From contig NC_052154.1 in assembly GCF_902713615.1 (NCBI RefSeq), forward strand, positions 80,393,072-80,457,071: a stretch of DNA of 64,000 bases. The letters run 5' to 3'. Below, in pieces: positions 50,361 to 61,560 of this stretch (the stretch's first letter is position 1; every line of letters begins with the position of its first letter). This DNA is from Scyliorhinus canicula. Its lineage: Eukaryota. The position numbers and the translations under genes are program-made. The notes below the pieces were generated by a model, which had not been told where the DNA came from, ran no database searches, and saw only the letters and a program-made list of their open reading frames with translations.

Positions 50361-50498
50361 TCAGCTTCTTTCATTCTTTGTCACCTTCACTCCTGCATAC
50401 ACTGTGCCTTTGTCTTGTTGAGCTTTGGATGGTTTACTGTAATCAGCAAGCTGCAAGGCGGCGTAAGTCAGCTTGTTATCTCCGCCCCTTTGTTTAGT
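50361..50498 (-). CDS. SIRP-like receptor exon 8 (terminal): module 3 TKQRGGDNKLTYAALQLADYSKPSKAQQDKGTVYAGVKVTKNERS-stop
   Basis: ctttcacAG acceptor, phase 0. LTYAAL (ITIM) and TVYAGV (ITSM), then TGA. Total CDS is 1167 nt = 388 aa + stop. Confidence 0.85.
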   Translation of the reverse strand, partial: TKQRGGDNKLTYAALQLADYSKPSKAQQDKGTVYAGVKVTKNERS

Positions 50499-50842
50499 CT
50501 GTGAAAGTAATATTTAATATCACTCGTTATCCCATCGCCTATCATTGTTGAGACACTCAAGATTTTAAAAATGTAATGTCCTCTCATTATTTGCAACTTC
50601 AGATTGTAAACGGATTTTGGATTCTCTGCAGCCAGCCCCAAATCTTATTGAAATCCCAGTTGACGCTTCATATAAAATGAGTTCGTCTGTTAATATAGCT
50701 CATTTAAGGAAGCAGGCTAATAGTTTGCTTACAATAGCAAAATGAATTCCACACTTCTGTTTGCAATGCTGATATTACACAAGACCGTTTTATGGCTCGA
50801 CAGTCGCTGTGACCTGTTTATCCTGCGGGGGGAGAGCCCCAG

Positions 50843-50893
50843 GTCAGACTTCTCAGCCTTCTCAGACTTCTCAGACTTCTGAGACTTCTCAGC
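50843..50893. repeat. 9-bp tandem repeat (CAGACTTCT-like, ~5 copies) in the receptor intron between modules 2 and 3
   Basis: Direct reading of the sequence. Confidence 0.8.
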
Positions 50894-51077
50894 CGCCTTT
50901 CTACCCCCTCCCACTGATCTCCTGATCTCTGAGACACGAGACAAAGGTGAGGAACCTTGCTTGAATCAGCCTTCTCAGCACAGTTAATAGATTAAACCTG
51001 GGACCTTCTCATTTCCTACAACTCAATGTCCTATCACATAACAACGATGCTGTCACAATAACTGAACTGAGATTTAC

Positions 51078-51188
51078 CTGGGAATATACCGTCCTCTCCT
51101 CCCTCTGCCTGGGGTTCCCATTATTCCTGCTGCTAGTTTGGACAGTGGCGTAGCACAGAGACAGGCTGTTGTCGGTTCCGTGTTTTGT
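51078..51188 (-). CDS. SIRP-like receptor exon 7: tyrosine module 2 TKHGTDNSLSLCYATVQTSSRNNGNPRQREERTVYSQ
   Basis: 111 nt, phase 0-0, ttttacAG / GTaaat. LCYATV (ITIM) and TVYSQ. Confidence 0.8.
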
Positions 51189-51538
51189 CTGTAAAACAGA
51201 TATTTTTCGCACTCACCAGGTGAATTTCATACTCTTTTAGTTTAGGGCAATCATTATTTAGACAGACCGCAAACAGCAACTGGGATAATAGTGACTCTAC
51301 TGTTGTGTAAAACCGATCATAAGATTCTGCAGCCTGACTTACATCTCTGCACATTGCTATCTCCAAACAGGTCAGTGGGAGAGCCGCCAAAACTTTAGGA
51401 TTCGATTAATTCTGTTGCATCAAGTCAAAACCTCCTCCTGAGATTCTGTACAGTTTCTCAGTATTGACGGTTATTGCGGAGTGTTAATCTTGTATGGTAA
51501 TAAATTGAATATTGTTTGCCTCAATGTCTCCGTCCTAC

Positions 51539-51649
51539 CTGGGAATAGATGGTGGGCTCTTTCTCGTGTCTCGGTTTGGAGGGTCCTCTGTCTTCTCTAA
51601 AGTTTAGGCTGGCGTAGGCGGCAATTTGCTCACTAGGTCCTTGTGTAAC
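51539..51649 (-). CDS. SIRP-like receptor exon 6: tyrosine module 1 VTQGPSEQIAAYASLNFREDRGPSKPRHEKEPTIYSQ
   Basis: 111 nt, phase 0-0, tttttacAG / GTagga. AAYASL (ITIM-like) and TIYSQ. Confidence 0.85.
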
Positions 51650-51829
51650 CTGTAAAAATAAGATATGAAATGCTGAAAGCGGCGACTCTGCCTCTGTAGC
51701 CAGCCACCGTCATTCTAAGTAATTCTGAAAGTGTAAATATGCAGACGCGAAACGATAAATCTGGGCCGCAAGTGAACTCTTTCCAATCTCAATGATTGTA
51801 TCTAATATCGCACCAACAGGGTGGAGAAT

Positions 51830-58170: not shown

Positions 58171-58175
58171 CTTAC

Positions 58176-58472
58176 CTTGAGTGACGGTGTAGCTGACACT
58201 GGCTGGCACCTTAAGGGAGATATGAGATACCAGACAGGTATAAACTACTCCATTCGGTTCAGGCCTTGCTTCTTTCAAAGAGCTGGAGACCTCAAAAAGA
58301 CCCTCCGCCGTCTCGTTTTTCACAGTTTCTATTCCGGTCAGAATTTCCACACCATCTCTTTGCCAGGAGATTCTGAAATATTCCGGGTAAAAGGCAGCCG
58401 TTTTGCATTCGAACTTCAGAGAAGTCGCTGAATTCGCTTCAATCTGAACCATTTTCAGGGGAGTTGGGGGAA
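58176..58472 (-). CDS. SIRP-like receptor exon 3: Ig C1-set domain
   Basis: 297 nt, phase 1-1, ttgaAG / GTaaga. C1 signatures FECKTAAFYPEYFRISWQRDG and YTCLVSH. Confidence 0.92.
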
Positions 58473-59171
58473 CTTCAATCGAGAAAAATAACACAATTTA
58501 AATGTTATTTTTCTACCTCTGTTATGTTACATTCCTAATGTGACAATAATTATCCGTGCCATCTTTTTTCTTTAACCTCATGTTTGCAATTATTTTAAAA
58601 ATAATTTCATAGCGTACAAAAATTGTTTGGGTGTATTGCCAAAGGAACACAGGGAGGATAAATCTCCCAGAGCTGGCGACAATGGGTAAATCACGGATCA
58701 CTGTCCCGGCTGGAAGGTCAGCTTCTGGAATGGGAGCGTTTTTTGCTGAGAAGACCCAAGTGAGATTCCTTGTCCCAATCCATGGGAGGGAGCGTAAACA
58801 AGTCACGAACAACAAAATCCCTCACGTTTTCTCTCAGAATTAAACTAAACATTCATTTTTTAAAATCCATTGTCCAAATAATTCATATGTTGCTGAACAT
58901 ATTTTGTTTTTTACATTTAATGTTGAAAACAGGTGCGTAATTGAGTTATACCCAATGTCTATAAAGTTTCCACACTCGATGTTACTACGTGTATAGATTA
59001 AAATCCGTGCATTAACAATGATTAAACAACATTTCTCTGGTGGGTGTTTCTGATCGTGCAGCGTTTACAAAAGGAACTTTCGCCAGAGGGGGATTTGAGG
59101 CCTGAAACATATTTCTCAACAGGACAGGGCTTTATTACTAATTATATATGGGAGAGTAGATCATAACTTCC

Positions 59172-59432
59172 ATGTGGGTAGCACAGTGGTTAGCACTGTT
59201 GCCTCACAGTGCCAGGGTCCCAGGTTCGATTCCCGGCTTGGGTTAGTGTCTGTGCCGAGTCTGCACATTCTCCCCGAGTCTGCATGGGTTTCCTCCGGTT
59301 TGCTCCCGTATGTGAATTGGACATTCTGAATTCTCCCTCCGTGTACCCGAACAGGCGGTGGAATGTGGCGACTAGGGGATTTTCACAGTAACTTCATTGC
59401 AGTGTTAATGTGACAATAAAGATTCTTATTAT
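59172..59432 (+). mobile_element. tRNA-derived SINE
   Basis: A-box-like TAGCACAGTGG, B box GGTTCGATTCC and shared tail. Confidence 0.82.
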
Positions 59433-60989
59433 GCATAGTGAAATCAAATACATAATCTTCACTGCATATTTTATGTAATCCCAGGGATTTTGCCCTTCTA
59501 CAATTTCATTGAGTATGTTGGGCATGGCTTGCCTGGAGAATCTTCTCTCATTTTTGATATTCCATTGCTCCACAGTCACCGTTTAACTGGAAAAATACTT
59601 AATTAGGTTTGCATTATTTTGTTGTTCATTTCAAATCGCTCAACATAGTTTCTTCATACGTTTACATTTCTAAATTCTCGTAAAAGAGAATTATTAAATT
59701 AGAAACATTATTAACTTTCATGATTATGTTAGTCTATATTTCCAGCAAAGGCTCAGAATTCCTCTATTATTTTCCAATGGATCTACTTTACGTTTAATAT
59801 AACATGCGACAGAATCCCCCCTTGGCAGAAAGAAGCTTTCTCTCGGTCTCCTGCCGTAACCTTCTTCTGAGCATGGAGAGTGTAGAGGGAGATCATAAAT
59901 TACAAATACTGGAGCCCAGGCGTTTATAGAAATGTTCGGTGATATCCAGCCTTCACTTCAGCAGTTGTGAATGAAACAGGGATGGTCCCATTGGTGTACC
60001 CCAGAGGTTCAAACTGTCCTGCGAGCTCTCGGATTGGGGTTGAATCCAGAATTGAGGGCAGGATCAACATCTCCCCTCTGACTGGGTTGTAGGATTCCTT
60101 TGTGGAAAGAGCTCGGAATTTCATACAAGTTATTAATGGACACAAATACAAAGTATAAAGTGCGGACATAGGGGCAGGGGAGATTTCGGCCGCTCCAGCC
60201 GGCTCTGCCTTCATTTAGATTATGCCTGATCTCTACCTTATCTCCATTTGTCCCATTTCGGTCCATTCTCCCGATACCCACGATTTATTTCCCTTGATGT
60301 CCATCTCAAATTTCTAACAGTTCGGCATAGAATTAATCGATTGGCAGTTTTCAGCAGGGACCTAAAAGTAATCTTGTGTGTGGAATATTAATGTCAGTAA
60401 GTAAGAGGAGTTTCCGCTTGAATGTATACTGAAGGCACTTAATTGGGGCGGATTGGTCTTTAACGCTGTATAAAGGAGTTTATTTAGGAGGTGTTCAAAT
60501 TGTTCTGATTAAAGGTCGCAGATCTGAAGCCTTGACTCTCCCCATAGGTGTTCATAGATCCCTTGAGTCATTTTCCTGTTTAAATTATTTCAGTATATGC
60601 AATATTTTGCTTTTGTATTAAAATTGTCCCCAGTGTCGCACTTTGGCGCCATTATTTTGCTGAGCGTGAAGCGAGCTATCTTATCCCATTGACTAACCAG
60701 AAGCAAGATTATGCCGTTTCTTCTATCTTGGCTCAATCGGAATTGCAACCTCACTAAAAGCACTAATTGGATGGAATGTCACGAGGACGAGGAGTGGGTG
60801 AAATTGATCGTGGGCCTGAGCGCAAAACGAGCGATAAGGGATCGACGACCGTTGAACGTCAAGGTCAATGGAAAAGAAAATCCCCCAAAGCGTAAAACAA
60901 ACCGATACCGCCAGATTTTCAACTAGTAATACGTTAAAATTACATAACTCGCACAAAGCCGGAAAGCGCCCTGGAACAATTACACTTAC

Positions 60990-61295
60990 CAAACACAGTG
61001 AGCTGGGAGCCGCTTCCATCCCCAATATTGACCTGTTGATGTTTGACTTTACAGTAATACATTCCGGAGTCTGTAATACTCGCATTTAGAATTTCTAATG
61101 TACTCCGTCCCTTCTTTGGACTAAATCTCTTCCTGTTGTCTGGTTCCAGCCAAGATTCAGCGCCGCGTTTCCACCAAGAAACTTCAGGAGCATCTTCATA
61201 TATGGAAAACGTGCAAAACATGGAAACATTGTCACCCCTGGCTACCGTCAGGAGTTTAGGGAACTGTTCCACTTTGTTCGAAGTTATTTTGGCGG
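60990..61295 (-). CDS. SIRP-like receptor exon 2: VJ-type Ig V domain
   Basis: 306 nt, phase 1-1, ttcctAG / GTaagt. Motifs VEQFP, GDNVSMFC, VSWW, LEILNASITDSGMYYC and J-like GDGSGSQLTV. Confidence 0.92.
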
Positions 61296-61505
61296 CTAGG
61301 AAATAAGTAGAAAAGAATGTGGATAACAACTGCATACGTCAGAGAAGGAAAATAACTAAATGGAGGAAAATTCAAAAAGAATGAAGAAACACCAGCAGTG
61401 GAATTTGAGAACGGCAGCATCTATTTTTTTACAATGTATACAGTTGTAGATGTAAAATACCATTTAAGCTATTCTAAAACGGCAACATATAACAACTCAA
61501 CATAC

Positions 61506-61560
61506 CTGACCAAATCAGGCCCAGAAGAGCCATATACTGAGCTGTAACTCTGATCGACAT
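61506..61560 (-). CDS. SIRP-like receptor exon 1: signal peptide MSIRVTAQYMALLGLIWS
   Basis: ATG with A at -3, hydrophobic core, phase-1 GTatgt donor compatible with the V exon acceptor 210 nt downstream. Confidence 0.75.

Follow-up and report, generated by a model that had tools for sequence, protein, structure and literature searches.

An inhibitory-type VJ-C1 receptor gene with a three-module tyrosine tail, probably one half of a paired receptor system in cartilaginous fishes

We analysed a window of 64,000 nucleotides (nt) from the genome of the small-spotted catshark Scyliorhinus canicula (contig NC_052154.1, forward-strand positions 80,393,072 to 80,457,071); positions below are counted from the first letter of this window. 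On the minus strand, from 61560 to 50361, lies a gene for a membrane receptor with immunoglobulin (Ig) domains. Inspection of splice sites and frame identified eight exons that have AG acceptors and GT donors and agree in phase; they join into 1167 nt, that is, 388 codons plus a stop in an uninterrupted reading frame. The encoded protein comprises, in order, a leader, a variable (V) domain, a C1 domain, a transmembrane segment and a tail. A preliminary description, made from the letters of the window, had proposed that eight phase-compatible exons encode a 388-residue type I membrane protein; this model stands, and it is identical to a RefSeq prediction. The parts of the gene are as follows, M1 to M3 being the repeated modules of the tail and J standing for joining.

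61506..61560, minus strand: exon 1, with the start codon and the larger part of the split leader; 55 nt, ending in phase 1; ATG at 61560, donor gtatgt; N-terminus identical to XP_038662960.1
60990..61295, minus strand: exon 2, single-exon VJ-type V domain; 306 nt, phase 1 to 1; J-like GSGSQLTV; acceptor ttcctag, donor gtaagt
58176..58472, minus strand: exon 3, C1-set Ig domain; 297 nt, phase 1 to 1; FYP...W and YTCLVSH; Pfam C1-set
55313..55417, minus strand: exon 4, encoding the stalk and a transmembrane helix without charge; 105 nt, phase 1 to 1; omitted in RefSeq isoform X2
54504..54547, minus strand: exon 5, juxtamembrane cytoplasmic; 44 nt, phase 1 to 0; joints in RNA-type contigs
51539..51649, minus strand: exon 6, module M1; 111 nt, phase 0; AAYASL ... 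TIYSQ; both sides joined in RNA-type contigs
51078..51188, minus strand: exon 7, module M2; 111 nt, phase 0; LCYATV ... TVYSQ; both sides joined, in 3-4 runs
50361..50498, minus strand: coding part of exon 8, module M3; 138 nt (135 nt and the stop); LTYAAL, ADYSKP, TVYAGV; joint in 3 runs
49556..50360, minus strand: 3' untranslated region (UTR), its extent inferred from contigs and from the polyadenylation-type signals ATTAAA/AATAAA

When the 3.6-kb intron was scanned for splice sites, the short exon 5 ranked first among the candidates. The transmembrane segment contains no charged residue, and a single C1 exon lies between the V exon and the transmembrane exon; a tblastn search with the V and C1 domains, combined with inspection of open frames, found no further Ig exon in the introns within the window. 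The domain order that had been proposed, namely a leader, a VJ-type V domain, one C1-set domain and an uncharged transmembrane segment, is supported by the GxGSxLxV strand in the V exon and by a true C1-set domain after it. With one C1 exon only, the layout also differs, as had been pointed out, from the V-C1-C1 arrangement of mammalian SIRP-alpha.

An HMMER search with the C1 exon led, through cluster look-ups, to a RefSeq entry of 388 residues, XP_038662960.1 (P0182), which is identical to the exon-derived model at every position (100%) and carries the title 'natural cytotoxicity triggering receptor 3 ligand 1-like isoform X1 [Scyliorhinus canicula]' (NCR3LG1-like). The suspicion that the gene could be missed or misannotated was therefore misplaced, since the RefSeq structure is already correct over its 388 residues and only the name misleads. 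The gene is thus one that RefSeq had already predicted, and it is one of many copies in a large, unstudied family of cartilaginous fishes. RefSeq isoform X2 (P0183, 353 residues) differs solely in skipping the 35-residue transmembrane exon. Such an isoform is predicted by RefSeq in the horn shark too (P0160), and it would fuse the ectodomain straight to the tyrosine-bearing tail.

Transcription of the locus could be followed with contigs of four runs from four studies of the same species, placed on 50000-55999. The runs were labelled RNA-type by an automatic guess; the spliced contigs are themselves evidence of RNA. Four joints were found: M3 to M2 (50498|51078) in three runs, M2 to M1 (51188|51539) in four, M1 to exon 5 (51649|54504) in three, and exon 5 to the transmembrane exon (54547|55313) in one (contig X19). 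All four read CT..AC on the plus strand, which is GT..AG for the receptor gene. Past the stop codon, contigs run unbroken over 360 nt or more of 3' UTR, to 50000, the edge of the stretch examined, and one extends to about 620 nt, about 259 nt beyond; ATTAAA and AATAAA lie 767 and 804 nt past the stop. Several small runs of the same species contain about 0.2-0.34 of the sampled words of 50000-51700, roughly the exonic and UTR share of that interval, and one run also has an unspliced version upstream of M1. The junctions leader-V, V-C1 and C1-transmembrane are based on the identical RefSeq model and on an orthologue alignment that runs ungapped across the exon joins. The gene is intact and expressed, its transcription being observed over the 3' half.

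Contigs of run X26 reach a depth of 60-74 over 54200-54600, against 11 for the gene's own spliced contig, and a loose end occurs at 54409 in X25 as well as in X26. Next to exon 5, something besides the receptor mRNA is represented, which may be a repeat-derived transcript.

The ectodomain consists of two recognisable Ig domains. In Pfam, the V exon matched I-set (E-value, E, 3.4e-12) and V-set (7.4e-11), and the C1 exon matched C1-set (5.8e-7); weaker Pfam matches were to CD80-like C2-set and to butyrophilin Ig-C. The V domain has the canonical Cys and Trp, the DSGxYYC motif and, within the same exon, a J-like G-S-G-S-Q-L-T-V strand; in the family alignment Cys and Trp are invariant and a G-x-G...L-x-V strand is present. 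Exon 2 is a germline-encoded VJ domain, and its leader is split. Residues 19-220 were modelled with AlphaFold from an alignment of 52 family sequences; the model is confident, with a predicted local distance difference score (pLDDT) of 90.6 and a predicted template-modelling score (pTM) of 0.80, and comprises two beta-sandwich domains. Foldseek matched it to antibody light chains in the PDB (E ~1e-15) and, among Swiss-Prot models, to B7-H6, T-cell receptor (TCR) beta, SIRP-alpha, Ig lambda/kappa, TAPBPR, butyrophilins and CD276, with E from 1e-14 to 1e-12 and 16-25% identity. Sequence and profile searches of the PDB returned the same mixture of V-C1 proteins, the C1 exon matching UrIg2 (9dmx), B7-H6, CD276, IgM and MHC II beta. 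In these comparisons Ig light chains, UrIg2, B7-H6, CD276 and TCR-beta score equal to or above SIRP-alpha. The ectodomain thus appears equally close to SIRP-alpha, B7-H6, Ig light chains and TCR-beta; in design it is SIRP-like. None of the B7-H6, SIRP, TCR, Ig, TAPBPR, butyrophilin and CD276 names that automatic annotation has scattered over the family amounts to demonstrated orthology.

The cytoplasmic tail is built of three homologous phase-0 exon modules of 111, 111 and 138 nt, as had been proposed, motifs included. Their homology is above chance: local alignments gave z of 5.0-7.3, and the observed score was reached in 0-2 of 2000 shuffles. In each module a tyrosine at the position of an ITIM (immunoreceptor tyrosine-based inhibitory motif), in AAYASL (M1), LCYATV (M2) and LTYAAL (M3), is followed 23, 22 and 22 residues later by a TxY tyrosine, in agreement with the 22-23 residues given earlier; in the spliced sequence the latter motifs read TIYSQT, TVYSQT and TVYAGV. 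Of these six, LCYATV and LTYAAL conform to the ITIM consensus and TVYAGV to that of the immunoreceptor tyrosine-based switch motif (ITSM). Together with the uncharged transmembrane segment, motifs of the form (S/I/V/L)xYxx(I/V/L) place the protein, by sequence, with the ITIM-bearing inhibitory receptors of the Ig superfamily. The tail has seven tyrosines and not six as first counted, the extra one, Y363, lying in ADYSKP and being replaced by Ser in the orthologous horn shark protein. Pfam found no match to the individual tail exons; the whole transmembrane-plus-tail region approached the SIT family (SHP2-interacting adaptor) below threshold, at 20 bits against a cut-off of 27.6 (E 0.001).

Comparison with relatives indicates how this tail arose. 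In a 21-sequence full-length alignment, most relatives have two modules, which correspond to M1 and M3, and M2 is an insertion relative to 18 of the 21, which the catshark gene has in common with two genes of the horn shark. In some chimaera genes the modules number three or four, the extras being added C-terminally. The cloudy catshark model scyTo_0019690 shares the transmembrane segment, exon 5 and all three modules, its tail being identical at 123 of 133 residues. M2 starts like M3 (TK.G.DN.L..YA) and ends like M1 (R..E..T.YSQ); for this reason M2 has the look of one unit in an old tandem repeat, and not of a duplicate of a single neighbour. The alignments point to a three-cassette tail made by exon duplication and conserved over at least two shark orders. 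The tail thereby offers a clean natural case in which the number of tyrosine motifs was changed via duplication of a 111-nt phase-0 exon.

The preliminary description implied that the receptor was unique, which overstated the case: it is one member of a large paired-receptor family. Relatives were found by an HMMER search with the C1 exon and named by cluster look-ups, and every V-C1 match whose name was looked up came from Chondrichthyes, the genera being Scyliorhinus, Heterodontus, Heptranchias, Mustelus, Chiloscyllium, Stegostoma, Mobula, Hypanus, Hemitrygon, Narcine, Pristis, Amblyraja and Callorhinchus. The family models include XP_038662960.1 and XP_038661933.1 (S. canicula), XP_067906043.1 (Heterodontus francisci) and XP_007902901.2 (Callorhinchus milii). 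Ectodomains within the family are 40-97% identical, and the tail is either modular, with ITIM and TxY motifs, or short and preceded by a charged transmembrane segment; roughly half of the members have long tails with ITIM-type motifs, and the remainder are short-tailed. Identity to the catshark C1 domain ranges from 40 to 87%. Over the full 388 residues, identity is 93% to the paralogue XP_038661931.1 and 66% to the horn shark protein XP_067906043.1. RefSeq gives the family at least six unrelated automatic names, among them 'tyrosine-protein phosphatase non-receptor type substrate 1-like' and 'SIRP beta-1-like'.

A near-identical relative is the catshark protein XP_038661933.1. It is identical to the receptor at 99 of 102 V residues and 91 of 99 C1 residues, and then continues into an unrelated transmembrane segment containing an arginine and a short tail, as is characteristic of SIRP-type twins. 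A tblastn search with the tails of P0166, P0003 and P0175 found no alternative activating-type transmembrane exon within the window; hence the short-tailed twin is a separate gene and not a splice variant. A second short-tailed paralogue has 87% identity in C1 and only 50% in V. Among paralogues generally, V domains are 37%-97% identical, whereas C1 and tail are conserved. An ectodomain tree by maximum likelihood groups the four catshark sequences in a single clade; long- and short-tailed forms are thoroughly interleaved in it, and well-supported branches force at least 14 changes of tail label. We read this pattern as that of paired inhibitory and activating receptors with diversifying V domains.

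The 93%-identical paralogue XP_038661931.1 (P0165) lies on the same 198.8-Mb chromosome, with a downstream neighbour that has OGFOD1-type Pfam domains; the window itself contains no genes flanking the receptor. It is annotated with 271 residues and ends in '...EEPVG', an ending that its sequence would acquire by read-through of the exon-5 donor into the intron. Its ITIM modules may have been overlooked by the annotation.

Because the receptor has a near-identical short-tailed twin with an arginine in the transmembrane segment, we propose that it is the inhibitory half of a paired system within a large cartilaginous-fish family of non-rearranging VJ-C1 receptors, a reading that we consider quite probable. 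The membrane-distal V domain would bind a ligand, and Src-family kinases would then phosphorylate the tail tyrosines. Each 37-residue module may serve as one docking unit, ITIM-type plus TxY, for tandem-SH2 phosphatases of the SHP-1/SHP-2 type, and three modules, against the usual two of the family, could provide more or stronger docking. The recruited phosphatases would oppose the signals of the activating twins, which share nearly the same ectodomain and have a transmembrane arginine and a short tail. Through that arginine, the twins would presumably pair with adaptors bearing immunoreceptor tyrosine-based activation motifs (ITAMs).

Several observations weigh against this proposal. Its biochemical steps are drawn from the roles that the motifs play in SIRP-alpha, Siglecs, CEACAM1, PD-1 and similar receptors, and three of the six paired motifs are non-canonical, AAYASL having Ala at -2 and TIYSQT and TVYSQT having Thr at +3. 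Some short-tailed members of the family, such as XP_038661931.1, may be truncated models and not activating receptors. The RNA status of the runs was guessed automatically, and junction support from reads extends to the four 3' junctions. The preliminary description had tied its model to such support, and for those four the contigs provide it, the three 5' junctions resting on the RefSeq model and the orthologue alignment. It would also have given way to an already characterised orthologue with the same tail structure: orthologues with three modules are predicted in horn shark and cloudy catshark, and none is experimentally characterised.

The receptor could instead be the cartilaginous-fish orthologue or co-orthologue of SIRP-alpha, the CD47-binding 'don't eat me' receptor, with the third Ig domain lost or never gained. 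SIRP-alpha has a similar pair of tail motifs, xxYAxLNL...TEYASIQT, twice repeated, and these paired motifs recruit SHP-1 and SHP-2 in mammals. Many members of the catshark receptor's family bear SIRP names in RefSeq ('...substrate 1-like', 'SIRP beta-1-like'). The SIRP-alpha structure 2wng is collinear with the receptor over V and C1 (E 2.2e-11 by sequence, 118 bits with the family profile), and SIRP-alpha models are among the top fold matches (E 1.4e-13, TM-score 0.72). The pairing of inhibitory and activating forms is also that of SIRP-alpha and SIRP-beta. However, the receptor has one C1 domain instead of two, and Ig lambda light chain, UrIg2, B7-H6, CD276, TCR-beta and TAPBPR score equally well or better. 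V domains that differ as widely among paralogues as those described above, over a conserved C1 and tail, argue against one fixed ligand such as CD47. Sequence searches recovered no bony-vertebrate SIRP; a profile search with the full-length family alignment gave one weak match, from Danionella, a result that the word prefilter of the search makes little informative. SIRP orthology therefore seems unlikely to us. A role as a B7-H6-like ligand, displayed for NKp30-type receptors and not itself signalling, is more improbable still, despite B7-H6 being the best single-domain PDB match to the C1 exon (~37 bits, E 1.7e-8) and the top Swiss-Prot fold match (E 9.8e-15, TM-score 0.78), and despite the weaker CD80-like and butyrophilin matches in Pfam. 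Identity to B7-H6 is 21-22%, and its scores do not separate from those of SIRP-alpha, TCR-beta and Ig light chains. The J-like G-x-G-S-x-L-x-V strand and the repeated canonical ITIM/ITSM units of the tail speak against a ligand, and near-identical twins with a charged transmembrane segment are the signature of a paired receptor, not of a ligand.

We regard as very improbable that the main product is a secreted or cytosolic V-C1 isoform without a transmembrane segment, the membrane receptor being minor and the tyrosine motifs having little signalling role. RefSeq does predict the skip of the 105-nt transmembrane exon in both catshark and horn shark (P0183 and P0160, as above), but the sole contig that reaches exon 5 from upstream, X19, joins the transmembrane exon. 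A joint from C1 to exon 5 did not appear in the contigs placed on 50000-55999, a stretch that ends short of C1. Moreover, from chimaeras to sharks the modules of the tail have been kept together with their tyrosines, a conservation that implies selection for a function in the cytoplasm.

The proposed inhibitory receptor has likenesses to several known systems. With SIRP-alpha and SIRP-beta it shares a VJ-type V domain followed by a C1-set domain, paired tail tyrosines, and activating twins with a near-identical ectodomain and a basic transmembrane residue; in contrast, SIRPs are V-C1-C1 with four tail tyrosines, and the catshark receptor is V-C1 with seven tyrosines in three exon modules. With B7-H6 (NCR3LG1) it shares the V-C1 ectodomain, and it differs in having the J-like V strand, repeated ITIM/ITSM modules and paired activating twins. 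Close paralogues of the catshark receptor receive quite different automatic names, and the RefSeq name 'NCR3LG1-like' is unjustified for it. Tandem ITIM-ITSM receptors (CD33-type Siglecs, CEACAM1, PD-1, BTLA) carry an ITIM and, some 20-26 residues on, a TxYxx(V/I)-type motif. The catshark tail resembles theirs in placing an ITIM and a later TxY-type motif on a type I protein of the Ig superfamily, but here the ITIM-plus-TxY unit is a discrete, repeated 37-residue phase-0 exon. Since the unit is one repeated exon, the tyrosine count varies by exon duplication.

UrIg and UrIg2 resemble the receptor in their germline single-exon VJ domain, split leader and C1-set domains, and in being confined to cartilaginous fish. 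UrIg2-type proteins were the highest-scoring matches to the C1 exon outside the family, at about 30% identity per domain. The top-scoring match to the C1 exon was the Carcharodon carcharias protein XP_041031359.1 (P0001), named 'titin-like', which has 1105 residues and ten C1 domains. In the PDB it best matches UrIg2 of the nurse shark (E 4.8e-86), so that an automatically misnamed UrIg2 orthologue is probable. Shark UrIg2 has nine to eleven C domains, with no mention of an ITIM tail (PMC12227049), and the catshark receptor has instead one C1 domain, a transmembrane segment and an inhibitory-type tail; the biology of UrIg2 differs as well. UrIg2 had been a lead from the PDB search as a close relative of the receptor and was rejected, its score having been added up from three weak domain matches.

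Germline single-exon VJ genes joined to C1 have been sought as relics of the gene into which the RAG transposon moved (PMC12227049). The short-tailed twins of the receptor resemble a TCR chain in having V-J-C1, a basic transmembrane residue and a short tail. It is conceivable, if doubtful, that the VJ-C1-transmembrane family is the membrane-bound, non-rearranging lineage nearest to the TCR/Ig ancestor, or the SIRP counterpart, and that its inhibitory members tune their signal by cassette duplication; if so, the three-cassette tail would be a naturally 'dosed-up' inhibitor relative to two-cassette paralogues. The family carries a VJ-C1 ectodomain on inhibitory and activating tails in dozens of copies, from chimaeras to sharks, and exists as automatic predictions only. 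Our literature searches on SIRP-like, ITIM-bearing and B7H6 receptors of cartilaginous fish met no description of it, with partial coverage that leaves 'undescribed' unproven. The 97%-identical activating-type twin makes a ready-made pair for ligand and signalling work.

Downstream of the gene, a second, diverged copy lies on the minus strand at 25815-41083, with about 60% protein identity. It has only a transmembrane-like part and two tail modules, and no V or C1 exon lies in between.

40976-41083, minus strand: partial copy, similar to the receptor transmembrane exon
27790-27903, minus strand: partial copy, similar to M1
25815-25955, minus strand: partial copy, similar to M3

This copy (25.8-41.1 kb) was considered as a source of alternative 3' exons for the receptor and rejected, as transcripts go from M3 directly into their own 3' UTR. 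Fragments of reverse transcriptase occur at 52657-53341 and in 30900-39700. At 55000-55200 and 55600-56000, contig depth rises into the thousands, with many mutually inconsistent joints. Similar pieces occur near 20150-20400, 26600-26900, 40140-40410, 42500-42800 and 59190-59390, and the translated motif of the repeat, …LWEETGAPGGNP… / …LGPW.CEA…LTT…, recurs across the window. The high depth and the inconsistent joints mark a short interspersed repeat.

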